Below, piece by piece: positions 22,001 to 64,000 of a stretch of 64,000 nucleotides of DNA; the first letter of the stretch is position 1, and every line of letters begins with the position of its first letter. The notes below the pieces were generated by a model that worked only from the letters and a program-made list of their open reading frames with translations, was not told the DNA's origin and did not search any database. Both the position numbers and the translations under genes were made by a program. Source of the stretch: Macrostomum lignano (Eukaryota); contig NIVC01000708.1 of assembly GCA_002269645.1 (NCBI GenBank), forward strand, positions 62,001 to 126,000, written 5' to 3'.

Positions 22001-25000
22001 GGAGGGTCGGCGAGTCGGCAGCCGGTGCCGTTGTCGGCGTCCGTGTCGCTGCCCAGGCTCAGGCCTTGAAGGTCCAGACGGATTCGCTCGCCTGGCAGCG
22101 CGCGGAACACGAAAGTACATGCGATGCCCGGCGGGTAGTTCTGCGGGTGCCTGGGCGAGAAGAACCGGCCAGACTTCGTCTGCTGGCTGCTCAGGAACTG
22201 CTGGTCGCAGTCTGAGTTGGGCACCGGCTGACCGTCCGACTTGTACTGATCTGCCGGGTGAGGGAGAGGACACAGTGTGTGTGTGTGTCAGTGCTGCTCT
22301 GCCGGATGAGGGAGAGGACACAGTGTGTGTGTCAGTGCTGCTCTGCCGGGCGAGGGAGAGGACACAGTGTGTGTCAGTGCTGCTCTGCCGGGTGAGGGAG
22401 AGGACACAGCGTGTGTCAGTGCTGCTCTGCCGGGTGAGGGAGAGGACACAGTGTGTGTCAGTGCTGCTCTGCCGGGTGAGGGAGAGGACACAGTGTGTGT
22501 CAGTGCTGCTCTGCCGGGTGAGGGAGAGGACACAGTGTGTGTCAGTGCTGCTCTGCCGGGTGAGGGAGAGGACACAGTGTGTGTCAGTGCTGCTCTGCCG
22601 GGTGAGGGAGAGGACACAGTGTGTGTCAGTGCTGCTCTGCCGGGTGAAGGAGAGGACACAGTGTGTGTCAGTGCTGCTCTGCCGGGTGAGGGAGAGGACA
22701 CAGTGTGTGTCAGTGCTGCTCTGCCGGGTGAGGGAGAGGACACAGTGTGTGTCAGTGCTGCTCTGCCGGGTGAGGGAGAGGACACAGTGTGTGTCAGTGC
22801 TGCTCTGCCGGGTGAAGGAGAGGACACAGTGTGTGTCAGTGCTGCTCTGCCGGGTGAGGGAGAGGACACAGTGTGTGTCAGTGCTGCTCTGCCGGGTGAG
22901 GGAGAGGACACAGTGTGTGTCAGTGCTGCTCTGCCGGGTGAGGGAGAGGACACAGTGTGTGTCAGTGCTGCTTGGCTGTCAATCTCAGATGCAATATTGA
23001 GCAGTCCGCAGTGACGCGGAACTCAATTCCTGGTATGCCGGATATTTTAATGAAGAGGCTGCATGCTCCCCGGGCATCTCACTGCCAAGCCTTTTTCATG
23101 CTGCAGACAACTTTGCATACGGCCTTTAATTAGCATTGATTTTTTTGTCTCAGAAACTACTCGCTTGAAATTCGGGAAATGGCTTTAGGAGATGCGGTGA
23201 GGACCCGGAGACAGGGCTGCTCGGTATATTCGAATTGTGGCAAGATAGGGGAGAGAAACTGCAAAAAAATTAAGCAGAAGGCCGGTCTTTCAGGCTGTGT
23301 GAGCAGGGAGGCAATGTGAGCAGGGAGGCTGTGTGAGCAGGGAGGCAATGTGAGCAGGGAGGCTGTGTGAGCAGGGAGGCTGTGTGAGCAGGGAGGCAAT
23401 GTGAGCAGGGAGGCTGTGTGAGCAGGGAGGCTGTGTGAGCAGGGAGGCTGTGTGAGCAGGGAGGCTGTGTGAGCAGGGAGGCTGTGTGAGCAGGGAGGCT
23501 GTGTGAGCAGGGAGGCTGTGTGAGCAGGGAGGCTGTGTGAGCAGGGAGGCTGTGTGAGCAGGGAGGCTGTGTGAGCAGGGAGGCTGTGTGAGCAGGGAGG
23601 CTGTGTGAGCAGGGAGGCTGTGTGAGCAGGGAGGCTGTGTGAGCAGGGAGGCTGTGGGAGCAGTGAAGGGGACTCACCAACCGGGATGAAATGGAAGGAT
23701 CCCCTGAACCCTGAGTAGCGCCGCACGGGCTGGTATTCGGTGTGCAGCTCCAGCATGAGAATCCTGGTGGACGAGTAGAAGTTCCGCTGCGGCAGCCGAT
23801 GGCCGCAGAGCTCGGAGTTTGGCCGGTCCGAGGGGCTGAGCTCGGCTCGAGGGCTGTCGAGGAAGAGGCGGACGAAGTCCTCGCACCTGCGGCCGGTTTG
23901 AGCACGAAAATTGGGAATGTTCGTTCCTGGATTTCTGAGTTCATACTGTGAGTCACCAACTCAGAACCCTAAGTCACCATAACTCACCTAAAACCTAAAA
24001 CACACCTGAAACATTACTAAATAAAACATTATTAAAACACACCTAAATCTCACCTAAAACACACCTAAACCACACCTAAACGACACCTAAAACACACCTA
24101 AACCACACCTAAACCACACCTAAAACACACCTAAGCCACACCTAAAACACACCTAAACCACACCTAAAACACACCTAAAACACACCTAAACCACACCTAA
24201 ACCACACCTAAACCACACCTAAAACACACCTAAGCCACACCTAAAACACACCTAAACCACACCTAAAACACACCTAAGCCACACCTAAGCCACACCTAAA
24301 ACACACCTAAAACACACCTAAACCACACCTAAAACACACCTAAGCCACACCTAAAACACACCTAAACCACACCTAAAACACACCTAAGCCACACCTAAAA
24401 CAGATAAGAAACCAGCAAAGAACTTAAACGACAGGGCAGTTTTTTTCAAATTTAAGAGCTGTGCCGCCAGTCCCGCAAGCAAGTTGGACTGAACTCTTCA
24501 AAGCTCGGATCCCGGGTTGCTAGGGCAGCTAGGGATTTGCTGCACTGAGCTGATCGCAGCGAGCTGGGCGGCCAAGCTAATTACAGGGTGGGGTGGGGAC
24601 TGGAGGACTTTCAGAGTTGAATGCGTAGTCCCAATCCCAGTTCAAGGGGATCTAAAAACTTGAAAATTCCTACTGTGTCGCTTTTCGAACATTGCGAGCG
24701 CATTAACACAGTGTTTTTCATTCATTCTAACTTTGCATCGAGACCAGCTCAGAAATCCCATGCATGACAATCCCAATTGTTTTGATGTTTGTTTGAAATT
24801 CAATAAGAGAAATATTTGCTAACCCAAAGTCTAGCTCATGGTCTCCTTGACCAGCCCCTAGGGACTGCACCACTGCTCACAGGGAGGTGGCAGGTGCTTT
24901 CGGCTGAGCGATCAGCCTGCAGTAATACTAGGTTTGAGCACAAAGACGCTTAGTATGGCTTGGAACTGGCTACCCTGCCTTTATGCATTCTCTGTCCGAA

Positions 25001-32026: not shown

Positions 32027-32097
32027 GCATCGGTGGTTCAGTGGTAGAATGCTCGCCTGCCACGCGGGCGGCCCGGGTTCGATTCCCGGCCGATGCA
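32027..32097 (+). tRNA. trnG: tRNA-Gly (GCC)
   Basis: 71-nt GCATCGG...CCGATGCA cloverleaf, anticodon GCC, intact A and B boxes, T-run terminator downstream. Confidence 0.97.
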
Positions 32098-33305: not shown

Positions 33306-33376
33306 GCATCGGTGGTTCAGTGGTAGAATGCTCGCCTGCCACGCGGGCAGCCCGGGTTCTATTCCCGGCCGATGCA
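33306..33376 (+). tRNA. trnG: tRNA-Gly (GCC) variant, possibly pseudogene
   Basis: Same as the 32027 copy except variable loop CGGC>CAGC and T-loop TTCGATT>TTCTATT (B-box change). Confidence 0.8.
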
Positions 33377-38291: not shown

Positions 38292-41200
38292 TCAGCTGGC
38301 CCCGTCTTCGCTCAGCGCGTTCCACCGGTTGCTCACCTGGACGGCCTCGGGCTTGGCCGAGCCGCCGAACGCCTGCGAGTGCGCCGGGTGGCTCCGGCGG
38401 CCGCCCGGGTCTCGCACGCTCTCAAATGGCCGGCTGTCCTCCACACCCGGCCGGCCGGCAGTCGCCGACGTTTCGCTGCTCTCAGCTCCGCCGCTGACGC
38501 CCGGCGCCAGTGTGGGGAACTCCTCCACGTCGTTGATGTTCGGCGCGTTCTTGTCGCGTCGGCCGGAGCCGCGCGGCAGCGGCCTGGCAGCGAACAGGTC
38601 GGCAGCCGGGCGCCCGCTGACGGCCGCTGCTGCCGTGCGCCGGTGCGGCGGCACGTACTGGGTGGCCCGCGGCGCCGACGGAGCCTCGCCGCTGCCGCCG
38701 CCAGCCGAGGCCGCCTGCGAATCAGCGCTGGCGCCGCCGCCAGCAGCAGCTGACGCTGCCGGAGCTTCGCCGCCGCCGGCCTCGCCGCCAGCCGCAGCAG
38801 CAGATTCTGCGGGTGCAGCGGCAGCGGCGGCCGCAGCGGCTGATTCAGCAGCTTTGCGACGCCAGGGACCTTCGTCAACGGAGCCGGCCTCGCCGCCATC
38901 CTGGCCAGAGCCGCCCTCGCTGCTGGCCTCCTGGGCTTGGCGCTCGGCCAGGTTCACCACGCGGAGGCCTTCGAGGTTGAGGCCTGATGGGTCGTCGAAG
39001 TCCTCCCAGTCGTCATCCTCCTGGGTTGGATGGGGAGACAGTGGGCACAGTCTACTAACAGTAGCCTAATGAGAACTGGACTATAATGAGAATTTTAGTT
39101 TCTATGGCTAGACCGAAAAAGATGGGATTTTGGTAAATCAAAAAGATTTAATACATAGAAAATTTATATTGAATATAAAAGGTAAAAGTATAAGATATTA
39201 AAAATAGACACTGATGACAAATTTAAAGCATCAGGGCACTAAGATAAATAATATTTAGGATATTATGTGTCAATGGTACTCAATACTACAAAGTTACTAA
39301 ATCTGAAAACAGGTTAATCTAAAATAATTCAACCATTTATTCTAAGTAGTAATATCTGCAACTGAGCTACTGTCAGGTGAAAATCATAACCCAGTTGTCC
39401 TGCTTTTTTTTATCATATCAACTAACAATTCTATCATATCAATTTATATGGCATTTTATTATATTTACAAAATCTTATATGAATATATAAATATTATATT
39501 TACAACTTTTTTTTAAATTGGCAACTGGCATAGGAAAAATGAAGTGGCATCATTTGATTGGCCTCTGATGCCAAAAATCCAGTTGCCAATAAGATTTTCA
39601 AGGGGCCAAAAACCCTGTATGGCCTAAAAAACCCAGGATAGGAGTCAAATCATTTTTTCATTTGAACTACCTTTTTATCTCAAACCTAGGTTAAAATCAG
39701 GGGGTCTCAACTTTGCGCAGATCAAAAGCCCTCTTTTAATACAAAAGACATTATTCTTAGCACTATCAAGACACCTTTTAGATGCCTAACATAGGGTTGG
39801 TAGCAAACTATATGTACTTTAAGCAGTGGCAATAGTGCAGTTTCGTTTGCAAAATTATTTTTTGTTTAAATTTGAAAGTTTGAAACCAGAAAACAATAAC
39901 AACAATAAAAAATAATGTTTTAAACCATTCTAATGATTGTGGCAGAGACCGTGGCAGCCATCAGGTCGCACGCATTTAGCTCTAGTTGCGGTAGAGCATT
40001 TGCTAGCAGCACTTCATTCAGCGGAATTATCCACGAGGGTCTTGGTGGTCGTCTAGCCATGATACAATATGTTGTCCAAAAGAAAAAGCAGATATTAGCA
40101 GCTTCTCAGGTAAAGGGAAACAGTTCAAGCCCCCCCCCACTTGAGCCCCTTTTGATTTTTCGAGCCTCTAACTCTATGTCTAAGGACACGGCCGCCGTGT
40201 CCATAGCTACCACACTACTCTGTGCCTAGAGCCATGGCAGCTGTGTCTTTAGCTGTGTGGACTCGCGGCACGGCCACCGTGTCCCTAGCTCTGTATATGG
40301 GGACACAGCAGCCATGTTCCTAGTAATCTACCACTCACATGCCTGGGGGCACGGCGGTTGTTAGATTTGGGTGAAAATCGGAGAAGTGAAAAAACAGCCT
40401 ATTTGACCAAAAGACAAACTTGGATCCACGACACAGTTATATACTTATGAGTTTTAGTATATTGGAAAAGATTGATCGACACAATATTTAACTGTCTTTA
40501 CGAACACTACTGGTGACATTCGAGCTACCTACGTACATGTATCAAATCATGTTCTCCGTGTCCCTAGTCATGGCGTTTTTTTAAAATATTTTTTCCATAG
40601 ACAACTTGCATTTCAAGTAGCATTCGAACGTGGAACAGATTTAATCAAAAAAGTATATTAATAGAGTGCCCATTTGCTTTAAAGTTCCATGACCAGTGAG
40701 CTTTGGCATAGTCGCTAGAATGGTTTAAAACATTGTTGTTATTGTTTTCTGGTTTTGAACTTTCAAATTTAAATGAAAAATAATTTTGCGAACGAAACTG
40801 TACTATTGCCTAAGCAGTCTACCTTTAAAATTCCTTGGCCATAGTAGGGATTAGAACATTGGCACTTTGCTATTAAACTACAACCTAAGCTACTAGTTCT
40901 TTATCTAGGGTAGGGCCTTTAAGAAAGTAAGGTCTAATCCCCTGCCTAGATTCCCCTTCTATCTTGATATTAGTACCTCTGGCCTTGGCTATAGCTCTAT
41001 AAGCTATCATTCCCTAGGTTATATCACAATTAAGTGTGATTTTCCTAAGCTAATACTAGCATATAAATAAGCATATTTAATATATCAGCTTATATATTAT
41101 ATTCCAATTCAGGGCTCATTGTTAGTTTCTTGTTTGTAAAATATTTTGTTCTATTCTTTATTATTGAAAGCCCTTTAAAATCAGGTTAGATGGCTACATA

Positions 41201-43553: not shown

Positions 43554-43624
43554 GCATCGGTGGTTCAGTGGTAGAATGCTCGCCTGCCACGCGGGCGGCC
43601 CGGGTTCGATTCCCGGCCGATGCA
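43554..43624 (+). tRNA. trnG: tRNA-Gly (GCC)
   Basis: Identical to the 32027 copy; TATAAA ~33 nt upstream, T-run downstream. Confidence 0.97.
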
Positions 43625-44013: not shown

Positions 44014-47000
44014 AAGGTATTCAGCTACGCTTCGTATTTTTCGGTCAGCAATTTCGGCGACCGGTCCAGCGGCAAGCAATTCGAAATTCCTGAGTCGCAA
44101 CGCCACGATGCAAACATTGGTCGCGCTCTCAGCGAGGTGGGCATTGACCCCCTCTATTCGGTGTTTTTCGATCTGCTGCCGAAGCGACCTCGCCACTCAG
44201 TCAGCGACAAACCGTCGCCTTGCGATTGGTGGCTCTGCTTCAGCGCCCACCTCGGCAAGTTCTGCGACTTCCCCAATCGGTGGAAGTCTCTCATTCAGCA
44301 GGTGCTGAGCAAGAACCCATCGCTATTGATGTACGTAGCCCAGCAGGTTATGGTGATGCTTCTCGATGAGAAGTACGGCTTCGACTTTGACGAGACTTAC
44401 CCGTCCAGGCCGTTCTGGTTCTTCATCTACGGCCTGCTGCTGCTGGATGAGCATGAGTGAGTGCCAACCTTAGGCGAGACCCTGCGGCCTTCAGCGATGT
44501 TAATCTTAATGATGACCCTTACAATATTTATCCCAATCCCCATCCTCAGGATATTTATAAATATCCCCATCCTCATGATACTCGTATGTATCCAAATCCC
44601 CATCCGCAGAATATTTATCCAAATCCCCATCCTCAGAATATTTATCCAAATCCCCATCCTCAGGATATTTATCCAAATCCCCATCCTCAGGATATTTATC
44701 CAAATCCCCATCCTCAGGATATTTATCCAAATCCCCATCCTCAGGATATTTATCCAAATCCCCATCCTCAGGATATTTATCCAAATCCCCATCCTCAGGA
44801 TATTTATCCAAATCCCCATCCTCAGGATATTTATCCAAATCCCCATCCTCAGGATATTTATCCAAATCCCCATCCTCAGGATATTTATCCAAATCCCCAT
44901 CCTCAGGATATTTATCCAAATCCCCATCCTCAGGATATTTATCCAAATCCCCATCCTCAGGATATTTATCCAAATCCCCATCCTCAGGATATTTATCCAA
45001 ATCCCCATCCTCAGGATATTTATCCCAATCCCCATCCTCAGGATATTTATCCCAATCCCCATCCTCAGAATATTTATCCCAATCCCCATCCTCAGAATAT
45101 TGATCCCAATCCCCATGCTCAGACTATTTATCCCAATCCCCATCCTCAGGATATTGATCCCAATTCCCATCCTCAGAATATTTATCCCAATCCCCATCCT
45201 CAGGATATTGATCCCAATTCCCATCCTCAGAATATTTATCCCAATCCCCATCCTCAGGATATTGATCCAAATCCCCATCCTCAGGATATTGATCCCAATC
45301 CCCATGCTCAGACTATTTATCCCAATCCCCATCCTCAGGATATTTATCCCAATCCCCATCCTCAAAATATTGATCCCAATTCCCATCCTCAGAATATTTA
45401 TCCCTGTCTTAGCTAAAGAATCCCAATCCCCCACTCAGAGAAAGCCAATGCTTATCCCACAAACTGCCATCCCCAGGCTGGCCGGCCTCACGCCGGCTGC
45501 CGACGGTGCCGCTAGCTGCCTGAGCCTGGCGGCCTCCACGCGCAGCAGCGGCGACATCCCAGCCGGGGTGAAGCGCCTCCACACGCTGTTGCACCGGCGC
45601 TACCTGGCTGGCCGCAAGCGGCGCCTTTCGCCCGACGTCTCCGTTGACTATCGCGCCGTCAGCAAGCGCCGCTGGAGCGAGTTCAAGCCGTGGTACCAGG
45701 AGCGCCAGCGTCAGCTGTTGCAGCTGACTGCGTCGCACCGCTCCGAAGGCAGCGGCGACTCGACTTCGCGTAGATGCGTTGGCGCCAGCTTCCTCCAGAC
45801 TTTCCTAGAAATTGTGCTAGCGAACGAGCCGCTCCGCCTGAAGCTGGACAAAGCGCTGTGCCGCCTGCCTTTGGATGAGTTCAGCGGCTGCTTGAACAGC
45901 TGCCTGTCGCAGACTGTGCACTGGAAGCAGCTCATGTGTCAGGACGGCTTTGCCCGGCTGGCCCGGCTCTCCTGGGAGCCGCCGCACACAGCCATTGGGT
46001 GCGTGCAGCTGCAGCCCATTAGTCAGCTGTAGTGCATTAGTTAGTCAGCTGTAGCCCATTAGTCAGCTGTAGTTCATTAGTTAGTCAGCTGTAGCCCATT
46101 AGTCAGCTGTAGTTCATTAGTTAGTCAGCTGTAGCCCATTAGTCAGCTGTAGTTCATTAGTTAGTCAGCTGTAGCCCATTAGTCAGCTGTAGTTCATTAG
46201 TTAGTCAGCTGTAGCCCATTAGTCAGCTGTAGTTCATTAGTTAGTCAGCTGTAGCCCATTAGTCAGCTGTAGTTCATTAGTTAGTCAGCTGCAGCCCATT
46301 AGTTAGTCAGCTGCAGTTCATTAGTTAGTCAGCTGTAGCCCATTAGTTAGCTGTATATATTAGTTAGTCAGCTGTAGTTCAGCTGTAGTTCAGCTGTAGC
46401 TGTAGCTGTAGTTCATTAGTTAGTCAGCTGTAGTTCAGCTGTAGTTCAGCTGTAGCTGTAGCTGTAGTTTATTAGTTTGTCAGCTGTAGCCCATTAGTTA
46501 GTCAGCTGTAGTGCATTAGTTAGTCAGCTGCAACCCATTAGTTAGTCAGCTGCAGTGCATTAGTTAGTCAGCTGCAGCCCATTAGTTAGTCAGCTGTAGT
46601 GCATTAGTTAGTCAGCTGCAGCCCAATAGTTAGTCAGCTGCAGTCCATTAGTTAGTCAGCTGCAGTGCATTAGTTAGTCAGCTGCAGCCCATTAGTTAGT
46701 AATGTTATGCAACATTGTCCCTGTCTTCCCGCAGGGTTTTCCCCACTATCCCGTCCCTGGACGCTGAGCCGAGGCAGCAACAGCAGCGGCGGCCGAAGCA
46801 GGCGGAGCTCCATTGTCTGCGGCTGCTGGCGAACGATTCTCGAGCAGTTTTCTGCGAGTTCACGAGTAATGCGGACAAGGACTATGTGAGCTACCGTTGC
46901 AACTTTATGCGTAAATAACCAGTTTCGGGTTTCTATGCGGAATTATTTGACAAAGTTTTCGCCTGCCCGAATCCGACAGAACGTGATGGCGTTCAGCTCC

Positions 47001-50000
47001 GAGTGGGAGGCCCTGGCCATGGCCTGGTACTTGCAGCGGCACCGGCTGCTGGCTGTTAGCTTCAGCCAGTCCATGCTGGAGCCTGACGGGGCCCTGGAGA
47101 GTCGGCTGCTGCTGCCCAAACTGCTGCAGCTCTACAGGCCTGTGCTAGGAATGTGAGTGGTTTAGATGTCACCCGCGCTGTGCAGGTGCTAATTAGTCCT
47201 GATAAGGGTGGGTCACCCATGCCAGTGTGAGTGAGTGCAGGTGCTAATTAGCCCTGATAAGGGTGGGTCACCCATGCCAGTGTGAGTGAGTGCAGGTGCT
47301 AATTAGCCCTGATAAGGGTGGGTCACCCATGCCAGTGTGAGTGAGTGCAGGTGCTAGTTAGCCCTGATAAGGGTGGGTCACCCATGCCAGTGTGAGTGAG
47401 TGCAGGTGCTAATTATCCCTGATAAGGGTGTGTCACTCAGGCCAGTGTGAGTGAGTGCAGGTGCTAATTATCCCTGATAAGGGTGGGTCACCCATGCCAG
47501 TGTGAATGAGTGCAGGTGCTAATTAGCCCTGATAAGGGTGGATCACCTTCAGCCAGTGTGAGTGAGTGCAGGTGCTAATTAGCCCTGATAAGGGTGGGTC
47601 ACCCATGCCAATCCCCAATCCTCTCGCAGAGCTCCGTTCATCCCAGGCAGAGGCCCCGACCCAGAGCAGCAGTGCGAGTTCAACCTGCAGCTCACAGCAT
47701 TCAACTGCTCAGATCCTGAGCAGCCCCGCCTGACACTGTCGGACCCGTCTGACGGCAACAAAGCTCACCAGGTGGGCTGGATGGCGGACCCAACCCTGGC
47801 GGCCAGGGCCAGCTGCGGCCGTCTGCTGCAGGGCCTGCTGTCCGACGTGCTGCCCATGGACGGCTTTGCGGTCCGGCCGGACACCCTGCCGGTGCTGAAG
47901 CCCAACGAGTTCCAGGTGCTCACTGACAACCATCACGAAAACCGACAAGGTCAGCGACCCACTTCTTTATTTTTGTCTTCCTATTTTTACATTTCTTAAC
48001 TTCTCCAATTTAAACGAAAATTGCCAAAATGCACTCTAAACAGTTGTGAGGATCAGCCTCACGAGCAACAAGTTTCACCTGCCTAGCCGGCTTGTGCTCA
48101 AGCGAATTCCGTCGGTAAGCTGCGAAAGTTGCTTGGAAATCAATTTAACTTTGTGATTTGTGTACTGTGTGTAATCTGTGCGCGGGTAATTGAAGCATGA
48201 GCAGGGGAGATGGGATCATGAGCAGGGGAGATGGGATCATGAGCAGGGGAGATGGGATCATGAGCAGGGGAGATGGGATCATGAGCAGGGGAGATGGGAT
48301 CATGAGCAGGGGAGATGGGATCATGAGCAGAGGAGATAAGGTCATCAGCAGGGAGATAAAATCATGAGCAGAGGAGTTAGGTCATGAGCAGGGAGATAGG
48401 ATTATGAGCAGGGGAGATGGGATCATGAGCAGGGGAGATGGGATCATGAGCAGGGGAGATGGGATCATGAGCAGGGGAGATGGGATCATGAGCAGGGGAG
48501 ATGGGATCATGAGCAGGGGAGATGGGATCATGAGCAGGGGAGATGGGATCATGAGCAGGGGAGATGGGATCATGAGCAGGGGAGATGGGATCATGAGCAG
48601 GGGAGATGGGATCATGAGCAGGGGAGATGGGATCATGAGCAGGGGAGATGGGATCATGAGCAGGGGAATGGATCATGAGCAGGGTAGATGGGATCATGAG
48701 CAGGGGAGATGGGATCATGAGCATGGGGAGATGGGATCATGAGCAGGGGAGATGGGATCATGAGCAGGGGAGATGGGATCATGAGCAGGGGAGATGGATC
48801 ATGAGCAGGGGAGATAGGATCACGAAAGAACGGGGCTGTAATTCCATAAGATATATTTGCCTTTGAACTCCCCGCCTTCCTCCCCGGAGTTCAATAACTT
48901 CGCGAAGACGCGGCGCCTGATGTCCCTCGCCAGTCAGTCCTGCCGCCTGAACTGCGCTCACATCAACCCGGTGCTGGCGCTCACCCTGGAGCCTGAGTTT
49001 GGCATCATCTCGGAGCTGCGACTCGCCTCCTGCGCCACTCTGCTCGCCAGCAGGCAGCGCAAAGTTCACTTCACTGTTGCTCACCTGGTCAGCATGCTCA
49101 GGCAGTGTCTCAGCGCACTCTTGTACCTGCTCAGGCAGACCTGTGTAAGTGGCGCTTATTGGACTCCTTCATTGGGGTGTACAGGAGTGCATTGGTGTTC
49201 ATTGGTGTGTACAGAGTGCATTGGTGTTCATTGAGGTGTACAGGAGTGCATTGGTGTTCATTGGTGTGTACAGAGTGCATTGGTGTTCATTGGGGTGTAC
49301 AGGAGTGCATTGGTGTTCATTGGGGTGTACAGAGTGCATTGGTGTTCATTGGGGTGTACAGAGTGCATTGGTGTTCATTGGGGTGTACAGGAGTGAATTG
49401 GTGTTCATTGGGGTGTACATAGTGCATTTGTGCTCATTGGGGTGTACAGGAGTGCATTGGTGTTCATTGGGGTGTACAGGAGTGCATTGGTGTTCATTGG
49501 GGTGTACAGAGTGCATTGGTGTTCATTGGGGTGTACAGGAGTGCATTGGTGTTCATTGGGGTGTACAGGAGTGCATTGGTGTTCATTGGGGTGTACAGAG
49601 TGCATTGGTGTTCATTGGGGTGTACAGGAGTGAATTGGTGTTCATTGGGGTGTACAGAGTGCATTTGTGCTCATTGGGGTGTACAGGAGTGCATTGGTGC
49701 TCATTGGGGTGTACAGGAGTGTATTGGTGCTCATTGGGGTGTACAGGAGTGTATTGGTGCTCATTGGGGTGTACAGGAGTGTATTGGTGTTCATTGTGGT
49801 GCACATGAACGCATTGAACTCTGCAGTCGGACAGTAGGCACCACAACAACATCAAGCTGTCGAACATCTTGATCGACTACCTGGACTCTAACGCCATTAA
49901 TGTCCGGCTGTGCGACCTTGCTTGTCCAGCTTCGACGCAGGAGTCTGTTGCCAACGACTTGAACAAGCTGCACCACTGCTTGTACGATGAACTGCTGTGC

Positions 50001-53000
50001 AATGATAGTCATGGAGGGGCGAGCGCCTGCAGCGAATGCAGCCTACTGCTGCCAGTGATGCGGCTGGTCAAGGCAAAGGCTGCTCCGCAAGGCAACGAGG
50101 AGGCCTGTCTGCTCGAGCTGGTTGCGGAGACCAATGCTCTGGATAAGACAGGTGAGCGCTGGTTGAGCGTGTTGGGTAGGCAGTGAGCATGTTGGGTAGG
50201 CAGTGAGCGTGTTGGGTAGGCAGTGAGCATGTTGGGTAGGCAGTGAGCGTGTTGGGTAGGCAGTGAGCATGTTGGGTAGGCAGTGAGTCAGATACGTTTC
50301 GCTGAGTAGTAGGCAGTGAGCATGTTGGGTAGGCAGTGAGCATGTTGGGTAGGCTGTGAGCATGTTGGGTAGGCTGTGAGCATGTTGGGTAGGCAGTGAG
50401 CATGTTGGGTAGGCTGTGAGCATGTTGGGTAGGCTGTGAGCATGTTGGGTAGGCAGTGAGCATGTTGGTTAGGCAGTGAGCATGTTGGGTAGGCAGTGAG
50501 CATGTTGGGTAGGCTGTGAGCATGTTGGGTAGGCAGTGAGCATGTTGGTTAGGCAGTGAGCATGTTGGGTAGGCAGTGAGCATGTTGGATAGGCTGTGAG
50601 CATGTTGGGTAGGCAGTGAGTCATACGGTACGCTGAGCAGTAGGCAGTAAGCAAGCTGTATATGTACAGACAACCCGATTGCAAACCTTGTGCCTTCAGA
50701 GATTCGTGAAGTCTTCCCTCACCCTGTGCTTCCCGTGGGCTGTCGGCTGACTCTGCCCAGCGAGTCCGACGGCCAGTGCCTGGGCGTGTCCGAGATCCCG
50801 CAGCACCTGCAGTTCAATCCGTCCGATCTGCTGCTCACCGGCGAAAAGCTGGGCTCCGGCTGCTTTGGCTCCGTGGTGCGCGGCTCCCTGCAGCTCAACG
50901 GCCGCAGGGTCAGCGTGGCCGTCAAGACACTCCGCAGCGACGCCTCCAACAGCCAATTCGTCAAGGAGGTCCTCACGCAGGCGAGTCTGCCGAAGCACGA
51001 GAATATACTGGAGCTGCTGAAGGTTTCGGAGGGTGAGTGAGTGGGTGTGAGTGGGTAAGCGAGTGAGTGAGTGAGTGAGTGAATGTGTGAGTGAGTGGGT
51101 GAGTGAGTGAATGAATGAGTGGGTGAGTGAGTGAGTGGGTGAGTGAGTGAGTGAATGAATGAGTGAGTGGGTGAGTGAGTGGGTGAGTGGGTGAGTGAGT
51201 GAGTGAGTGGGTGAGTGAGTGAATGAATGAGTGAGTGAGTGGGTGAGTGAGTGAGTGAGTGAGTGAGTGGGTGAGTGAGTGGGTGAGTGAGTGGGTGAGT
51301 GAGTGGGTGAGTGAGTGAGTGGGTGAGTGAGTGAGTGAGTGAGTGAGTGGGTGAGTGAGTGAGTGAGTGAGTGAGTGAGTGGGTGAGTGAGTGGGTGAGT
51401 GAGTGGGTGAGTGAGTGGGTGAGTGAATGAGTGAGTGAGTGGGTGAGTGAGTGGGTGAGTGAGTGAATGAATGTGTGAGTGGGTGAGTGAGTGAGTGGGT
51501 GAGTGAGTGAATGAATGAGTGAGTGGGTGAGTGAGTGAGTGAGTGAGTGAGTGAGTGAGTGAGTGAATGAATGAGTGAGTGGGTGAGTGAGTGGGTGAGT
51601 GAGTGAGTGAGTGAGTGGGTGGGTGAGTGAGTGAGTGAGTGAGTGGGTGGGTGAGTGAGTGAGTGAGTGAGTGAGTTAATGAATGAGTGAGTGGGTGAGC
51701 GAGTGGGTGAGTGAGTGAGTGAGTGAGTGGGTGAGTGAGTGAGTGGGTGAGCGAGTGGGTGAGTGAGTGAATGTGTGAGTGAGTGAGTGGGTGAGTGAGT
51801 GAGTGGGTGAGCGAGTGGGTGAGTGAGTGGGTGAGTGAGGGAGTGAGTATTCCCAGCAAGCAGCAGCGCCATCCAACACCTGCCCCCAGGTGAGCAGCAG
51901 CTCATCACTCCTTACATGGAGATGGCGCTGGACAAATACCTGGCCAGCCACCGCTCCCAGCTGTGCAGTCCTAACGGCCGGGCACTCGACTTTCTGCGCC
52001 AGATTGCCAGCGTGAGTCGCTTTGAAGATCGATTTTGGAGTGGGAATAGCCGCATAGGGATATGGAGAAGTAGAATCCCAAGGCTTTTAAGGGATTATCT
52101 GAAACCTTTTCATAATTTGATTAGCTCTGCATGATAAATTAGACATTAGCAGGGATTTATGAGCACAGATAGTGGATAGATGAGGGATTAACACATATAT
52201 TAGCGATTAAAATAAATAGATTCGGAACTAATGCACATAGATAAGGCATTTAACATGGATAGATTAGGCATTTGACATGGATAGATTAGGCATCAACATG
52301 AATAGATAAGGCATTAACATGGATAGATTAGGCATTTAACATGGATAGATTAGGCATTTAACATGAATAGATTAGGCATTTAACATGAATAGATTAGGCA
52401 TTTGACATGGATAGATTAGGCATCAACATGAATAGATTAGGCATTAACATGGATAGATTAGGCATTTAACATGGATAGATTAGGCATTTAACATGGATAG
52501 ATTAGGCATTTAACATGGATAGATTAGGCATTAACATGGATAGATTAGGCATTAACATGGATAGATTAGGCATTAACATGGATAGATTAGGCATTAACAT
52601 GGATAGATTAGGCATTAACATGGATAGATTAGGCATTTGACATGGATATATTAGGCATCAACATGGATAGATTAGGCATTTAACATGGATAGATTAGGTA
52701 TTTGACATGGATAGATTAGGCATTAAGATGGATAGATTAGGCATTTGACATGGATAGATTAGGCATTTGACATGGATAGATTAGGCATTAACATGGATAG
52801 ATTAGGGATTAGCACGAATAGATTAGGATTAACATGGATAGATTAAGCATTAGCACGGATAGATTAGAGATTAGCACGGATAGATTAGAGATTAGGATGG
52901 ATAGATTAGGGATTAGCATGGATAGATTAGTGATTAACACGGATAGATTAGGGATTAACACGGATAGATTAGGGATTAACACGGATAGATTAGGGATTAG

Positions 53001-53688
53001 CATGGATAGATTAGGGATTAACACGGATAGATTAGAGATTAGCATGGATAGATTAGGGATACAGATGGATTAGCAAGCATAGGCCGGCACAAGAGACGCA
53101 GAGCATGTGAACCCCCGTCGACTGCAGGGCATGAGGTTTCTTTCCGATTACGGAGTGTTCCACTGCGACCTGGCTGCCCGCAACGTGCTGATGGAGAACC
53201 TGAGCCCCGGGCCGCCCAGGCTGAAGATTGGCGACTTCGGTCTGTCCGGGATGTTTCAGAAGCGAGCTGATGCCGAGTACCTGTATTACACCTTGCCGAA
53301 GGACAACCGAAAGTTCCCCATGTACATCCTGCCGCCCACGGACTTGCAGACTAAGATCTACCCAACCACAGACAGCTGGAGCTTCGGCACCCTCATATGG
53401 GAGATGTTCAGCCATATTCCAGTGCTGGAGGCATTCTACGTCAACCCTTCCAGGGACAATGGACCCTTGCATCTGGTCGAGTACGTGAAAAAGAAGCCGC
53501 AGAAGTACCTGCTGCCATTGGATTCGGTGCCGCCACGTCTGCAGGGCCTGGTGCAGCGCTGCTGGGAGCCAGACCATATTGCCAGAATCAGCCTGCAGGA
53601 CATCTACAGTTTCTTGCATAACGATGTGCAGGCAATCTTTACTGAGCCGAACGGCATTGAGAAGAGTTCAACACGGCAGATAGACTAA
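44014..53688 (+). CDS. JAK: Divergent Janus kinase-like protein (FERM-like N-terminus, pseudokinase, tyrosine kinase), >=1104 aa, 5' incomplete
   Basis: join(44014..44456, 45477..45998, 46735..46885, 46980..47152, 47630..47949, 48044..48114, 48851..49144, 49827..50151, 50700..51032, 51890..52011, 53128..53688); phases consistent, acceptor at 48851 uncertain. C-terminal TK: LGSGCFGSV, VAVKTL, HCDLAARN, DFG, DSWSFG. Upstream degenerate kinase: HNNIKLSNIL, VRLCDL. N-terminal GIDPLYSVFFDLL and FSSEWEALAM resemble JAK FERM motifs. The TK call is secure; the JAK call is moderate. Confidence 0.7.
44520..45410. repeat. Intronic minisatellite, 27-nt unit ATTTATCCAAATCCCCATCCTCAGGAT
   Basis: About 33 copies in the first modelled intron of the kinase gene. 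Confidence 0.95.
46005..46700. repeat. Intronic minisatellite (AGTCAGCTGTAGCCCATT(AGTT) variants)
   Basis: Alternating ~21/25-nt units. Confidence 0.9.
47175..47610. repeat. Intronic minisatellite, ~54-nt unit GTGAGTGAGTGCAGGTGCTAATTAGCCCTGATAAGGGTGGGTCACCCATGCCAGT
   Basis: About 8 copies. Confidence 0.92.
48195..48820. repeat. Intronic minisatellite, 21-nt unit GATCATGAGCAGGGGAGATGG
   Basis: Direct tandem repetition. Confidence 0.93.
49170..49800. repeat. Intronic minisatellite, 28/30-nt unit TGCATTGGTGTTCATTGGGGTGTACAG(GAG)
   Basis: Direct tandem repetition. Confidence 0.93.
50165..50650. repeat. Intronic minisatellite, 20-nt unit GAGCATGTTGGGTAGGCAGT
   Basis: Direct tandem repetition. 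Confidence 0.93.
51033..51848. repeat. Intronic (GAGT/GGGT)n microsatellite starting at the splice donor
   Basis: Begins at the donor g|GTGAGT and continues as a tetranucleotide array. Confidence 0.95.
52250..53070. repeat. Intronic minisatellite, 22/23-nt unit TAACATGGATAGATTAGGCATT
   Basis: Direct tandem repetition with drift toward the 3' end. Confidence 0.93.
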
Positions 53689-56320: not shown

Positions 56321-59300
56321 TCAGGGGGACCCGTCGGTCTCGCCTGCAGCGCGGTCCTCCTCACCGACGGTGGGGAAGAAATCAGCTCGTCCGGTGTCCC
56401 TGAGGTACCGGGCGAGCAGCGGGATGCTCTCGGGCCTGCAAACGTCGGAGAGAACCGGGTTTGGCCCGAGGTGAGTAAGCCTGGCCCTGGTGAAAACCGG
56501 GCAGTGGCAGATAAAATGCTCGGCGTTTTCACTGCCTGAGCGGCAGAAGGGGCACCGCTCCTCGGGTACTTGGCCCTAAAGGAAACGGTGGCGAGAGAAG
56601 CAGCCATGCCCGGAGAGGGCCATGCTAACTGCTCTGAGGTCTCTGCGGTTGAGCCTGAGGGGGGCTCTACGCAGGAGAGGAGAGGGGCAGGGGACGGCAG
56701 CACGGGATTGCCTACAATTCCGGGTGTCGTGCCACCTGCGGAGATGCTCGGAGTCAGCCCAGCGCTTAACGCGGGAATTGATCACCGAGGCGGGGATGGG
56801 GGCTCCCGGGCCCGGCCCTAGCAGCGCGCCGGCGGAGCCAGCCTTGGCCAGCAGGTCAGCGCGCTCGTTGCCGAGGAAGCCGGCGTGGCCCGGGATCCAT
56901 CTGAGCTCCACTTGGTTGCCTAGCGCAAGCCCGTTGAGCTGGGTGTTGCAGTCCAGGACGGACCTGGAGCTGGCGGTGCTGCGGCAGAGGGCCCGAAGGG
57001 CAGCTTGGCTGTCAGAGTGAAAAATAAATTTCCGGCCGCTAAGCTGCCTTCGGCGCAGCTCTGCCGCGCAGGAGCTGATGGCAAGCACCTCGCTCTGAAA
57101 AACACTGGAGTTGAGCCCAGTGTGCTGGGAGTAGCTCCACACCACTTCTCCCTTAAAGAAGACGCAAGCTCCGAAGCCTGAAAGACCATGCCTCATAGAG
57201 CCGTCAGTGTAACAGTGGACTTCAGAATCGCTCCAGCTGTCACTCGCCTCGTGTCGAGGCTGAATGGTGACCTTATACCTTTGGCTCAGGAGAAGGGTGG
57301 CTGGGATCGAGTCCGTGAGGATGTTGAGCCCGCCACCCTCCTCGAGAGCCTTGAGGCAGAGGTCAGAGTGCGGGATAAGCGACCGCTTCTTAAAGGCCCG
57401 CACTTTCTTGAAGGCCACCCCAGCATCCAGAAGACGCCGGGTGCTCTTCGCCGCCTCTCCTTTGATATAAATATCCAGAGGAGGGGCACAGAGGAAGGCA
57501 TTCATGCCTTCAAAAGGAGTAGAGGGTGGAGCGCCCATAGTCATGCGGCAGGCTCTGCCCTGGATTTTGTAGAGAGCGTCGAGGTTGCTCTTGACGCTCA
57601 GGCCGCTAGCCCACACGAGGCTGGCGTAACTGATCGAGGGGCGGATGATGGCAGTGTAAATCCACCACAGCTTCCTGGGGGTGAGCCCCCAGGTGGTGCC
57701 CACGGCGCGCCTGATCTGAGCCAGTACAGCCAGGGCTTTTTTGGCTTTAGTTTGAATGTGCGGAGTCCAGTTAAGCCTGTGGTCCAGAGTGAGGCCCAGG
57801 CAGCGGACCTGCTTCTCCATGGAAATATTCTTTCCATAGAGGGTGAGGGGCTTAATGGTCCAGAGCAGTTTGTTGGTAAACATGACTGCTGTGGTTTTCG
57901 ACTCTGAGAGTCTAAGGCCACATTGGTTTGCCCAACGCTCCGCTCGTCCCAGAAAGCCCTGCAGAAGGTCTCTGATGGTATCAACCGAGGGGCCCGCGCA
58001 TATCGCGGTCACATCATCGGCATAGCCCACCTTGAGAATGGGGTCGTGGAGATCACTGCAAAGCAACTCATCCATGACCATGTTCCAGAGAACGGGGGTG
58101 AGAACGCCGCCCTGGGGGCCCCCTTTCAGGACAGGCACCGAAAGAGAGCTGCCGTTCAGGTGGGCCACAACAGTGCGGTTCCGGATCATGAACATGATCC
58201 ACCGGACAAGGTGAGGGTGCGTGGCCCTGGATTCCAGGGCTCTGCAAAAGGCCTCGAAGATGACGTTGTCGAAGGCCCCCTCAATGTCCAGGAAAAGCGT
58301 GTCGCGACTTTCCTAGTCATTTCTTAGTTCACCTTCAATTGTCTCTGTTTACTCCGTTTTCTCTCTCTCTGTCTAGCTCAATCTTGTTATTCTTATCTCT
58401 CTCTCCCTTGCTGCGTTCTGATTGGCTCTCCGTTCTCGCCTCTTTCCTCAGTCGCGCACTCCACCCCCTCTCTTTATTATTTTGGGCTCAACCCCCCAAA
58501 GTTAAATGTTCTATAAATATATCGGTTTGGGCCCTGCGCCCACTTACTGCTCATCCTGCTCCTTCAATTTAACTCCAATTAAATAGTCTTTAGTTTAGTA
58601 TTTTTTCTACAAAGCGAGAGGGCAAAGCCGCTGCCAAGAACGGCCCTCTCCAGGAAGTCAACAATGACATGGAGAGCACTCTCGGTTGACCTGCCCGCGC
58701 GGAAGGCGTGCTGGTTCTGCGAGAGTGGGAAGCGCTTCAGCTCGACCGAAAGTAGGCGCCAAAGCACCAACCTCTCGAGGAGCTTGAGGCAGAAAGAGGT
58801 GAGGCTGATAGGCCTGAAGGCCTTCACCGATTGGTAGTCGCTCTTTCCAGGCTTGGGGATAAAGACCACCCGGGCCTCTCTCCACGCAACTGGTACATAG
58901 CCCAGCTCCACACAAGCTCGAAGGAGACGACAGAGCAGGTCCAGGAAGCGGTGGTTTTTTACCGCCTCGTGCAAGAACGCTGGGTAGATGCCGTCGGGCC
59001 CAGGCGCCTTGAACGGGTTAAAGGACCTTGCCGCTCTAATAATGCGGTCTTTGGTGATCATAGACTTTGCTAGGCCTTGCCCTCCCACTGTGTGGTCGGG
59101 CGGGCCCTGCTGAGTCGGAGATTTAGGGAAAAAACTGTTGAGCATGAGCTCTAGAGTCTCTTCCGAACTCTCTGTGACCGAGCCATCAGGTCTCTTCACA
59201 ACAGAGAGTTTAGAAAAACGGTCATTAGTGAGTGCCTTAACCACGCGGGCTACGGGGCGAGAGCCCTCAAGCCCTTCGCAATATTGGCGCCACTTGGCCG

Positions 59301-60338
59301 TCTTGGCCCTTCTGACTTGGCCCTTAAACTCGTGGATCGCACGGGTGTAGGCCTCTATATCAGATGGGTCTTTGGTTTTGAGTGCTCGCCTTTGGAGGGT
59401 CCTGGCTCGGCGCCGAAGGGCCCCGAGCTCTGGGTTCCACCAGGGAGCAGATTTCTTGCCTTTATAGGCCTTTAGAGGGCAGGCTGCTTCAAAGGCAGTG
59501 GTGATCGCCCCGCCCAGGGAGGAGGCGAGATCATCCACCACCTGGCAGTCAGAGAGGTCACTGGGGGGTCAAGATCCCGAAGGCCGCGGCTCAGCTTCGA
59601 GCCAAAGGCGGCCCAATCGGTGTTCCTGACGTTCCGACTCCAAGTGACCTTAGGCTTTTGCTTGGTCGGCCCAATGCAAAAGCGGATAAAGCGGTGGTCC
59701 GAGAGCGAGTCCTCGTCCCACACTCGCCAGCCCGTAACTGCGGAAAGCAGTCCGGGTGAGGCGATGGTGGTGTCGATGACTTCGGCCCACCGCCCATTTT
59801 TGAACGTTGGTGCATTGCCCACGTTACAGAAATTGAGGTTTGTGCTGCTGACGTAGGCCAGCAGCTCCTCGCCTCTGTTATTGGTGTTCTTGCTGCCCCA
59901 ATGCAGGTGGTGTGCGTTCACATCCCCTGCAATGAGCAGCTCGAACCGTCGGGATGCGGCATAGTCAATGAGGTTGACTAGTGCGTCGCAGACTACTGGG
60001 GCATCGCCTGGGAAATAGGCAGATGCTACCAGCGCAGGTTTATTTGGAATGAGGTTATTGATTTGAACAACACAGATGTCCCCAGTCGAGAGATCAGGTC
60101 TCATCCATGCTTCAAAAGCTTTTGCAGCAAAGACCAGAGATCTTGGGCGAGGCTGAGAGTCCGCCATGCAAAAACAGTGGTAGTCAGATGGCACATTATT
60201 TGGCTTACCTTTAGTCATCCAGGGCTCCTGCACGAAGACCAGGCCCGGAAGCTGTTGCTCTGTCGTGCGCATCAGGTTGACTGACGCCGCCACGCAGTGC
60301 TGAGTGTTGATCTGCAGACACCAGGTAGCCGCTGGCAT
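56321..60338 (-). pseudogene. LINE ORF2 (AP endonuclease - reverse transcriptase - RNase H - CCHC), disrupted
   Basis: Frameshift at the G6 run 59563-59568; solo-LTR insertion 58300-58611; nonsense TAG at 56576-56578; true stop 56321-56323. YADD, YTDGS, HSDSQAAL, WIPGHAG and CPFC..HFICHC motifs are present. Confidence 0.9.
58300..58611 (+). mobile_element. Solo LTR (312 bp), BEL/Pao-like by TSD length
   Basis: TGT...ACA ends; 5-bp TSD AAGCG at 58295-58299 and 58612-58616; TATAAA 58512-58517; ATTAAA 58578-58583. Removing it restores RT GFALSLFLDIEGAFDNV. Confidence 0.85.
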
Positions 60339-60390
60339 CAGTGCAGATCGGGTGTTGCAGTCGCCAGGAGTTCCTCCTCCTCCTCGGCGC

Positions 60391-61854
60391 TCACCAGCTT
60401 CGGGTCGGGGTCACCGGTGTCCATGGGCTCTTCTTCAGCAAAAGGCCCCGGTTGGTCGGAAGGCAATAGGCAGCGTTCGCCGCCCTTCGCCCACCAGCCA
60501 TGGGGTCCTCCGCTTCAGACTGGCCCAATGCCCTGGAGCAGCCAGCCGCCTGGGCAGGCGGGTCCGTCTCCAGTCGGCCCTGCCCCGAGGGGTTGGGCCC
60601 AGCTGGGACATCCCCACCCTCCCTGGACGAACTGGTGCGCCTAGGCGTCCCGGCGACCTCTCTCCTCAGCTGGGTGATTTTGGCGGTACGGACTGCCTCA
60701 GCTGCGCGCTGGTACAGGCCGCGTCGCTTGGTGCTGCGTGCCGGGCGTCGGTCTCCGCCCTCAGCAGCGCGCTCGGCTTTACCCGCGCGGCCGTGCTGCC
60801 GGGCGGGGCGGTTTGCTTTGGCAGCCTGAGCAGAAGCTCGCGCCACGGCCCCGGCTGCTTCGGCATTCCGCCCGCCCTGCTCACCACCACGGGGAGGGTC
60901 GGCCTCGTAGGAGCGGATACGCAGCTTCCAAAGGCCGACGTTGATGAAGCTGCCGTGCGGATAGCGCCTCATCCAGGCGTCCGACAGCCCCAGGATGGCT
61001 GTGAAGCCAGTGCCGTCGGTGCGCTTAAGGGTGTCATGCACCACTAGGCCCGCGGCGGGAAGCTCCCGGTTGACTGCTAGCAGTCCTTTCCGGAGCTCGT
61101 CAGCAGAGGTAACGACGCTCCTGGCCGGAACCCAGATTCGATGCCTCTTGGTCCGGGGGCGTTCGTCCTCTCTGCAGAAGGCTAGGTTGAGGTCCCAGCT
61201 CTGCTCGGACAGCAGCTCAAGGAGCCGCCGACCCGAGTCAGCATCACTGGGCCAAATGAGAAGGCACGAGTCCCTCGTTGCATTCAAATGAATGTTCAGA
61301 GGCGTGCCCTTCAGAGTTTGCTTCCACAGGAGGCCATCAACGGCACCTCTCACCTGCTTCAGCTGATCGGGAGACAGGCGCGCGTCCTTCCCCAGAATGA
61401 CAACCGCCGGTTGCCTCTTTGCCGCATCAGCGTAGGAGGCCCGGGGGTCGGTGGAGCATTTTTCAGGTGGGCTGTCCACCCTCCCGGCTGCATCGGCCTC
61501 CCCATCCTGGACAGGGGCTTCAGTGGGCTCGAGGCCCTCTTCCGCCACCGCCCCAGATTGGGAAGCTTCCGCTGCCGCGGGCCGTTGGCCCCTGGCGCCG
61601 GTTAGGCTTCCGCCCTCCTTGGCCCGCCTCGCCTTGTTAAGTCGACGGCGGGCAGCTCCTGAGGTGGTGCTCAGCTGCTTGGCAGCTGGAGTAGCAGGTG
61701 TCTTCTCGGAGGCACCGCTCAGAGTTGGCTCCACGGGTCTCGCCGAGGCGTCCCCGATGGTAGCAGGTGGTATGGCCGCGGAGTCCACGGCCCCAGCCGA
61801 GGCCGGAGGCACTGTGTCATCCACAGCCGGTTGGGTACTTCGGTTAGAAGCCAT
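60391..61854 (-). CDS. LINE ORF1 (nucleic-acid-binding, DUF4780-like), probable frameshift near the C-terminus
   Basis: First ATG 61854 (MASNRS); SYADAAK, RIWVP...ELRKGLLAVNREL...GLWKLRIRSY; no zinc knuckle. An alternative frame gives an acidic tail ending at 60338-60340. Confidence 0.75.
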   Translation of the reverse strand: MASNRSTQPAVDDTVPPASAGAVDSAAIPPATIGDASARPVEPTLSGASEKTPATPAAKQLSTTSGAARRRLNKARRAKEGGSLTGARGQRPAAAEASQSGAVAEEGLEPTEAPVQDGEADAAGRVDSPPEKCSTDPRASYADAAKRQPAVVILGKDARLSPDQLKQVRGAVDGLLWKQTLKGTPLNIHLNATRDSCLLIWPSDADSGRRLLELLSEQSWDLNLAFCREDERPRTKRHRIWVPARSVVTSADELRKGLLAVNRELPAAGLVVHDTLKRTDGTGFTAILGLSDAWMRRYPHGSFINVGLWKLRIRSYEADPPRGGEQGGRNAEAAGAVARASAQAAKANRPARQHGRAGKAERAAEGGDRRPARSTKRRGLYQRAAEAVRTAKITQLRREVAGTPRRTSSSREGGDVPAGPNPSGQGRLETDPPAQAAGCSRALGQSEAEDPMAGGRRAANAAYCLPTNRGLLLKKSPWTPVTPTRSW

Positions 61855-62084
61855 TGGCTGGAAGTAAAAAGGTGGGACTTCCTGCAGAACACAGGCAAAG
61901 AGCCGCAAGGCCGCAACCCCAAACCAAGCGGCAGGCCCCCAAAAAGCGAAATACCACCCTGCGGGGGGACCCAAAAGCGCAAGGGGAACCGTTAGCGACC
62001 AGACTACTCCCTGGTCAAGCGTCCATCAGCACGGAGTTACACTGGGACATTAGAGGGTGCGTTTATATGGTCACACCAGGACCC

Positions 62085-62717: not shown

Positions 62718-64000
62718 TGACGCGACCCAGACAAGACTTGTTTTAGTTTGAACGATAACGCAGCGAACTGATATATTTGTTGAGTAAAAAAATCACAACG
62801 AAGAAAAGCTATATTCAGTTATTTAAATACGAAGTGGTATAAAACGAAATTTGAGTTATCGATAAAAGTTAGAGTAGAAAGTACGTTATGTGCGCATTGA
62901 TGTACGCATGAGTGGGGTGCACGCTTGGCGTGGTAAGCAGGGCACAAAGTGAGTCAAAGTTTAATAGTCAATAGGCAGCGACAACCCCCCAACACGTCAT
63001 CTTCCCCGTCCGAACCATTCGGAATTGATCAACGGTAGGATCTGATCCTGATACCAAGGACTACTTAAGAACACAGGACGTTACACTTGCAAATATTGGC
63101 AGAATTCTAAAAGGCCGCTTTGAATGCATGTGTCTATGGTTTTAGTGGCCTTTTTGCTTAGTAATTCGCATCGCAGCGTAGCATGATACTCATAACCCAT
63201 AAGTCTACGTTAGAGCACCAAGCAGACAAGATCGCAAACAGCTCACTTTATTGTGTTCTCTGGATCTTTTATTTCTTTCTTCAAATTAAATTATCAATTG
63301 AGTTATACAAGATGCCGACGAAGTGTTGCGTTCCAGGCTGCACAAGCAACTACACACACACTACACATTATACACATTGCTTCAAATAGCAAAAAGGCCA
63401 CTAAAACCATAGACACATGCATTCAAAGCGGCCTTTTAGAATTCTGTTCTTAAGTAGTCCTTGCCTGATACATGTACGCCCGGAGACGCCCGGATCCTTG
63501 TTGAATGAGGGCGGTATTCGAGCCCTTCTGCAGGAGAAACTCCGCCTTTTCAGGAGGCAGTCCGGCGGCGGGGACGTACCAGATGCCCGATTCGATCGGC
63601 GTGCGCATGGTAATGGGATTTCGAAACTGCCGACCCATCAGCTCCGATGGGCTGTGCGGACGTCCTGCATGCGGGATGCAGCGGTAGTTTAGTAGAAGCC
63701 TGGCCAGGAATTGCTCTCGTACGTTTCTCGACGATCCCAGCCCAGAGAGGCCTTCTTGATAGATTGGACCATTCGATGCCGTTGGACTGAGGATGTAGTG
63801 GCGGGGTCTTGATGGGGCGGCAGCCGATTCTCTCGAGCCAGCCGGTCAGTTCAGCATCATGGAATTCTGCCGCGTTGTCGCTTACCAGCACGTCTGGGAC
63901 TCCATTGCGAGAGAAAACGTCCTGGAGCACACGCTTCACGGTTTCTGCGCTTCTATCTGGAACTCGCACGGCCTCTGGCCAGCCCGACATTGCGTCCACG
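62718..64000 (-). mobile_element. 3' end of a Ty3/gypsy LTR retrotransposon (integrase C-terminal half, PPT, 3' LTR)
   Basis: Integrase WPEA..VLQDVFSRNGVPDVLVSDNAAEF..TPPLHPQSNG, frameshifted afterwards. PPT GGACGGGGAAGA (63000-63011) abuts a 282-bp LTR 62718-62999 with TGACG...CGTCA ends. Continues beyond the window. Confidence 0.88.
63055..63463 (+). mobile_element. Non-autonomous P-superfamily element with a THAP-domain stub
   Basis: CAAGGACTACTTAAGAACA terminal inverted repeats; 8-bp TSD CCTGATAC at 63047-63054 and 63464-63471; MPTKCCVPGCTSNY at 63312; inserted in the gypsy integrase tail. Confidence 0.88.

Follow-up and report, generated by a model that had tools for sequence, protein, structure and literature searches.

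A tyrosine kinase gene of Macrostomum lignano with a degenerate kinase-like domain and a JAK-like layout

Does a kinase that is built like a JAK have to be one? The question is raised by a gene of the flatworm Macrostomum lignano, located at 44014-53688 in the 64,000-nucleotide stretch of contig NIVC01000708.1 that we analysed (assembly GCA_002269645.1, positions 62,001 to 126,000 of the forward strand; 'the window', whose numbering is used throughout). A preliminary description, made from the DNA letters alone, read this gene as a fast-evolving JAK that standard searches could miss. We think it probable, short of being confident, that the product is instead a lineage-restricted orphan cytoplasmic (non-receptor) tyrosine kinase (TK), that is, an intact kinase preceded by a dead kinase-like domain, the N-terminal half of the protein being novel. 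As judged from sequence comparison, the resemblance to JAKs is one of layout only, and membership in the JAK family is not supported on present evidence.

The gene is already annotated: the translation of 11 exons on the + strand (44014-53688) matches PAA78088.1 (M. lignano, 1091 aa + stop) residue for residue, and GenBank titles this entry 'hypothetical protein BOX15_Mlig009938g3, partial'. We retrieved PAA78088.1 by translating the open blocks between 44 and 54 kb in draft form and then picked the exon set by a search over candidate splice sites, with tblastn also used; one set equals the annotated protein, and the splice sites of all 11 exons are GT-AG. The boundaries and the exon number first proposed are therefore exact; the JAK-like size also holds, although the count of ~1104 codons was ~1% high. 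There are three near-identical copies (g1-g3), of which g1 and g2 lie elsewhere in the assembly and the gene described here is g3. Its exons are as follows (all + strand; P0010 and P0008 are introduced below):

44014-44456: exon 1, aa 1-148; acceptor TTTTCAG/AAG; holds GIDPLYSVFFDLL (44140-44178) and YGLLLLD (44428-44448)
45477-45998: exon 2, aa 148-322; N-terminal region, fold unrecognised; blocks FLxTFLEIVLxNE, VHWK and GFARLA common to the sole relative found
46735-46885: exon 3, aa 322-372; first ~28 residues absent in the relative P0010, part spliced otherwise in model P0008
46980-47152: exon 4, aa 373-430; FSSEWEALAM (46992-47021) and the conserved block AWYLQRH
47630-47949: exon 5, aa 430-537; closes the N-terminal region and probably opens the pseudokinase N-lobe
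48044-48114: exon 6, aa 537-560; RLVLKRI (48088-48108), kept in P0010
48890-49144: exon 7, aa 561-645; pseudokinase alphaC to alphaE, on the basis of hhalign and Pfam Pkinase
49827-50151: exon 8, aa 646-754; catalytic loop HHNNIKLSNILI (49839-49874), degenerate with HRD to HNN, CDL in VRLCDLA (49902-49922), C-lobe unrecognisable
50700-51032: exon 9, aa 754-865; linker and TK N-lobe with GSGCFGSV (50852-50875), VAVK with K829 (50915-50932) and alphaC E843 (50957-50974)
51890-52011: exon 10, aa 865-905; TK hinge, alphaD and start of alphaE
53128-53688: exon 11, aa 906-1091 + TAA; HCDLAARN (53161-53184), DFG (53233-53241), EYLYY (53275-53298), degenerate P+1/APE PMYILPPTD (53317-53343), DSWSFG (53371-53388) and CWEPD (53560-53574)

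The C-terminal domain (aa ~800-1068) is a Pfam PK_Tyr_Ser-Thr domain at E=2.1e-44 (4.5e-21 for exon 11 alone); its best PDB sequence matches are Eph, Met and EGFR (~1e-24), and an NCBIfam scan returns generic kinase matches exclusively. The catalytic residues are complete, that is, the Gly-loop GSGCFG, K829 (VAVK), alphaC E843, D919 and N924 in HCDLAARN, and the DFG motif at 941-943; the TK-group signatures DLAARN, DSWSFG and CW are also present. From these residues we infer an active tyrosine kinase. The domain departs from the TK consensus in having HCD for HRD and PMYILPPTD for PxxWxAPE. The activation loop reads E-Y-L-Y-Y (Y956, Y958 and Y959), so the tandem tyrosines noticed at the outset are indeed there (Y958-Y959); however, a YY pair in this loop is not specific to JAKs, as it is also found in FAK, Met, Syk/ZAP-70, FGFR and InsR-type kinases. 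Because the change of HRD to HCD makes this a non-RD kinase, its activity may depend less on phosphorylation of the activation loop than the YY suggests.

To which TK family does this domain belong? With phmmer, it scores 89.7 bits against EphA3, 74.4 against JAK2 JH1, 66.5 against EGFR (partial domain) and 35.6 against JAK2 JH2. Searching a collection of 5.8 billion proteins gave 49 matches at E<=1e-10 that are VEGFR/FLT-like, TNK1/ACK, Srms/FRK/PTK6 and similar kinases with 27-37% identity; none of the 49 is a JAK, and none of the named ones is from a flatworm. The best matches are thus not JAKs, and pairwise scores do not group the domain firmly with another TK family either, none being clearly nearest. 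On these scores the domain appears to have no firm family home, its best matches coming from several TK families. One small point of spacing leans towards the JAKs: 63 residues separate the alphaF Trp from the alphaI CW in the flatworm kinase, compared with 69 in JAK2 JH1 and 47-59 (mostly 54-55) in 45 other TKs. The 9-residue alphaF-alphaG insertion is located at the site of the JAK family insertion, is shorter than that of JAK2 and has no significant sequence match.

The middle of the protein (aa ~520-770) contains the second, degenerate kinase-like domain. Its Pfam Pkinase match has E=0.0013 and 18.7 bits (the curated cutoff is 31.7 bits). Against an independent TK profile, built from 55 tyrosine-kinase domains with the middle domain excluded, it scores 4.9 bits, above 500/500 shuffles; the JH2 of JAK2, by comparison, reaches 134 bits against that profile. 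With hhalign, aa 579-662 align to columns 52-131 of this profile, that is, from beta4 to the catalytic loop (P=1.1e-4, probability 57%). A kinase-like domain, as the preliminary description had proposed in front of the tyrosine kinase, is thereby confirmed at the level of a weak but above-chance sequence signal. At the catalytic positions HRD has become HNN (the Asp is gone), DFG has become CDL and the Gly-loop is gone; because these are lost, the domain is predicted to be unable to phosphorylate. RLVLKRI in exon 6 is a candidate for its beta3 strand and Lys (K556). The domain is far more decayed than the JH2 of JAKs, and no likeness specific to JH2 was detected: against JAK2 JH2, hhalign gives P=0.31 over 11 columns and phmmer gives -2.8 bits.

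A signal of this size invites the explanation that there is no pseudokinase, that is, that the protein is a single-domain orphan TK whose N-terminal extension is long, partly disordered and lineage-specific, and that the signal at aa 579-662 is fortuitous. The Pfam and TK-profile scores just given fit such an explanation, as do the result of phmmer, which matched aa 1-792 to no PDB chain, kinases included, and the lack of a recognisable alphaF/WSFG-type motif or C-lobe. However, three different methods put the match in one shared, colinear stretch of the kinase fold (two with P<=0.002), and both the order of the motifs (VLK ... alphaC-like ... H-N-N-I-K-x-S-N-I-L ... C-D-L) and their spacing fit a kinase core, so we regard a fortuitous signal as quite improbable.

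The N-terminal ~500 residues would have to hold FERM and SH2 domains if the protein were a JAK. In the searches that we made, aa 1-792 match nothing in Pfam at E<=10 beyond the weak kinase signal, that is, no FERM, SH2 or JAK-specific model, and the N-terminal ~500 residues match no Pfam family and no PDB sequence. For direct comparisons, the human JAK2 sequence was checked against the PDB (1139 bits to 4Z32, 642 to JH2 entries and 697 to JH1 entries), and JAK1 and TYK2 FERM-SH2 sequences were taken from PDB alignments. Using a JAK1/JAK2/TYK2 FERM-SH2 profile, hhalign finds one match to the N-terminus, 35 columns around the first motif of the preliminary description (P=0.19, probability 0.3%; P=0.15 on repeat), and 32/200 shuffles (16%) score as high; the SH2 part of the profile gives no significant alignment. 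End-free global and local BLOSUM62 alignments to each JAK have z of -0.4 to -1.5 and a local P of ~0.3, rotated (circularly permuted) controls score as high as or above the JAK alignments, and hhalign in global mode returns trivial end overlaps only. AlphaFold2 models had a mean predicted local distance difference test (pLDDT) score of 35.8 when the whole protein was given as a single sequence and of 34.5 when aa 1-560 were given with a 4-row alignment, too low for a fold to be read.

The preliminary description had likened three strings in this region to FERM motifs of JAK2. The strings are where it placed them (GIDPLYSVFFDLL at aa 43-55, YGLLLLD at aa 139-145 and FSSEWEALAM at aa 377-386), and their JAK2 counterparts are genuine (at JAK2 76, 179 and 356), colinear and identical at 6/13, 3/7 and 5/10 positions, respectively; as evidence of homology, however, the likeness is at chance level. 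RasGEF-like motifs can also be found and aligned by eye in the same residues, which illustrates that short motif matches made by eye are not evidence. That the N-terminus is a RasGEF (Cdc25-homology) domain, the protein being a fusion of an exchange factor and a kinase, is suggested by the UniRef name of A0A1I8H763 (equal to aa 1-232), 'Ras-GEF domain-containing protein'; but there is no RasGEF or RasGEF_N match in Pfam at E<=10, no RasGEF among the PDB matches and, after validation of the SOS1 catalytic module, no support from hhalign against SOS1 (P=0.6). We rejected this candidate at the sequence level and give a RasGEF-kinase fusion almost no credence.

Is the protein complete? In the gene models of all three paralogs, the start is either the first base of exon 1 or lies one codon further in. 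Directly upstream is the acceptor TTTTCAG, with an in-frame stop 5 codons away and no ATG in between, and the frame runs through 105 codons without a stop until it reaches the first internal Met (chance ~0.0065, by the rough estimate (61/64)^105). In M. lignano, ~30% of genes are trans-spliced to a 35-nt spliced leader (SL) that ends in ...TTGCATG (PMC8629364). Exon 1 is in phase 0, so an ATG from the SL would be in frame (M-K-V-F-S-Y...). Position 44014 is most likely the SL trans-splice site of the mRNA, and the terminal AUG of the SL probably supplies the start codon; because it would do so, the protein is predicted to be essentially complete despite the label 'partial'. The preliminary description had called for the cDNA to be confirmed and the exon with the ATG to be found: the exons agree with the annotated protein, whereas exon 1 has no genomic ATG at its start, for which we look to the SL.

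The distribution of the family is narrow. When aa 1-792 were run against 1.84 billion representative proteins in a HMMER filter-only scan, 2 sequences came up, namely, a fragment of the same gene and P0010, a 356-aa protein that aligns from ~aa 175 to 560 with ~41-43% identity. P0010 is encoded by a 1228-nt contig of run SRR30276804 that is intronless and whose last letters, GTAAG, are the retained start of an intron where exon 6 has its donor; because of both features, we take the contig to be RNA from a relative. Looking up the clusters of P0010, P0012 and P0018 added no members. The family thus appears to be expressed, restricted and fast-evolving, and the gene has so far been found only in Macrostomum; two relatives that are only ~43% identical in their N-terminal halves illustrate the speed at which a signalling kinase can evolve.

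Exon 3 differs between these sequences: the M. lignano model P0008 joins exons 2 and 3 differently, and the P0010 mRNA is without the first ~28 codons of exon 3. The differences point either to alternative splicing or to an exon segment that was gained recently. A longer UniProt model, A0A1I8HA49 (1647 aa), was rejected as an artefact, its extra C-terminus being antisense frames read through the downstream long interspersed nuclear element (LINE).

Several points weigh against an orphan TK with a dead kinase-like domain. The pseudokinase statistics are weak and span only beta4 to the catalytic loop, the C-lobe being unrecognisable; trans-splicing and the use of the leader AUG are deduced from the genomic sequence and the published SL; and word-indexed database searches can miss distant relatives. 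There are also JAK-like features: the total length, the positions of the landmarks, the Asp to Asn change in the dead loop (HNN here, HGN in JAK JH2), the YY in the activation loop and the alphaF-alphaG insertion. These same features are what a true but extremely diverged JAK orthologue (FERM-SH2-JH2-JH1) in the early-branching Macrostomorpha, one that binds a cytokine-type receptor with its N-terminus and phosphorylates STAT, would be expected to show. To our knowledge, JAKs are the only TK family with a tandem pseudokinase-kinase; the length and landmark spacing follow those of JAK2 with offsets of 20-57 residues, except for the third landmark; and the best FERM-SH2 match with hhalign is on the F1 helix/strand, at the site of the first motif of the preliminary description, and the best local alignment to TYK2 is on the end of F3, at the site of its second (FSSEWEALAM).

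However, neither of these alignments is better than chance (P=0.19, 0.15; 32/200 and 64/200 shuffles), no colinear global alignment rises above the rotated or shuffled controls, and FERM, SH2 and JAK models are all missing from the Pfam matches. In addition, the kinase scores 74 bits against JAK2 JH1 compared with 90 against EphA3 and has no JAK among its 49 best database matches, the middle domain falls as far short of JH2 as described above, and both YY and Asp to Asn changes are common in other kinases. We therefore consider a JAK orthologue with those partners unlikely, if deserving to be weighed. What stands from the preliminary description is the layout, a pseudokinase followed by a kinase in a cytoplasmic protein of ~1090 aa with JAK2-like spacing; what does not stand is the identity as a JAK, for which the FERM, SH2, JH2 and JH1 comparisons provide no support. 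Neither of the two findings that it named as refuting a JAK emerged, the structure models being too poor to show a fold and the kinase domain grouping firmly with no other family. Just as doubtful is a genuine JAK with FERM-SH2 and JH2 domains that have diverged past recognition by sequence, which would mean that JAK signalling survives in macrostomid flatworms.

For the orphan TK that we prefer, the dead domain would probably regulate or scaffold the live kinase in cis, by analogy with JAK JH2 and other tandem pseudokinases, and the first ~500 residues presumably bind partners or localise the enzyme. If the tandem is real and independent, the JAK-type arrangement would have arisen a second time within the TKs, and the protein would be a natural experiment on the way in which pseudokinases acquire control over the domains beside them. 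If the protein is instead a relic JAK, the loss of JAK in flatworms would be moved to after the split of the Macrostomorpha, and the gene would offer a handle on cytokine-type signalling in a regeneration model with established knock-down by RNA interference. As for the flatworm background, the kinome of Schistosoma mansoni has no Jak row in its Table 2 (PMC3135232), and the Fasciola hepatica kinome paper never mentions JAK (PMC12837073); in the literature that we searched, we found no outright statement that flatworms lack JAK, the kinome tables having no JAK row and the reviews being silent.

Most of the sequence in 8/10 introns of the gene is one long minisatellite each, with units that are all different (8-68 copies, 73-94% matches); the only introns without an array are two of 94 bp. 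The arrays are:

44524-45403: 27-bp units
46006-46700: 22/40-bp units
47180-47610: 55-bp units
48196-48822: 21-bp units
49168-49816: 30-bp units
50164-50620: 20-bp units
51033-51848: 12-bp units, in intron 9
52237-53057: 21-bp units

The array in intron 9 is (GTGAGTGAGTGA)n with ~68 copies and begins exactly at the exon 9 donor; because of this, the 5' splice consensus GTGAGT is repeated >100 times downstream of the site that is used. Similar arrays occupy much of the remaining window. The neighbours of the kinase gene in the window are a CDV3 gene, a CUB-domain gene, tRNA genes and retroelements:

18410-19486 and 21733-22224, - strand: CUB-domain exons (Pfam E=5e-5 and 5e-8)
20132-21013, + strand: open reading frame (ORF) between the CUB exons, with the RNase H-like motif GHAGFPGNELADTLAK and no Pfam match
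32027-32097, 33306-33376 and 43554-43624, + strand: three tRNA-Gly(GCC) genes
38292-38960, - strand: homologue of CDV3 (Pfam family CDV3, E=2e-5, slightly short of the curated cutoff), called as the gene upstream of the kinase in the public annotation
~56576-61974, - strand: non-LTR retrotransposon just downstream of the kinase gene and on the opposite strand, with RNase H also present
59472-60338, - strand: endonuclease of this element
58579-59541 and 56576-58195, - strand: reverse transcriptase of this element
60391-61974, - strand: possible ORF1 of this element, no Pfam match
63550-63999, - strand: part of an integrase core (rve) from a different mobile element, truncated where the window ends

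On its upstream side, exon 1 of the kinase gene is separated by 390 bp from the third tRNA-Gly(GCC) gene (43554-43624), which lies in an AT-rich stretch (33-37% GC).

Among known systems, the JAKs (JAK1/2/3, TYK2 and Drosophila Hopscotch) are alike in their cytoplasmic size of ~1100 aa, in a dead kinase-like domain directly N-terminal to an intact TK, in an Asn for the catalytic Asp of the dead domain, in the activation-loop YY, in an extended alphaF-alphaG segment and in an N-terminal region of ~500 aa that is the right size for FERM-SH2. They differ in that neither sequence nor profile comparison detects FERM, SH2 or JH2 likeness here, JH1 is not the closest match of the kinase, and the pseudokinase of the flatworm protein is far more decayed than JH2, with an unrecognisable C-lobe; the flatworm kinase also has HCD for HRD, DLAARN where JAKs have DLATRN and the degenerate PMYILPPTD. 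The ACK/TNK, Srms/FRK/PTK6 and VEGFR/Eph/Met kinases share the canonical TK core (28-36% identity over the domain); however, their SH3, SH2, SAM, CRIB and extracellular modules are absent here, no one of these families is clearly nearest, and the flatworm protein has the extra dead kinase-like domain. GCN2, a tandem kinase with one dead domain, is alike in principle, a degenerate kinase domain being located beside an active one; GCN2 and other such tandem kinases are Ser/Thr kinases with other accessory domains, and no relationship to them at the sequence level is expected.

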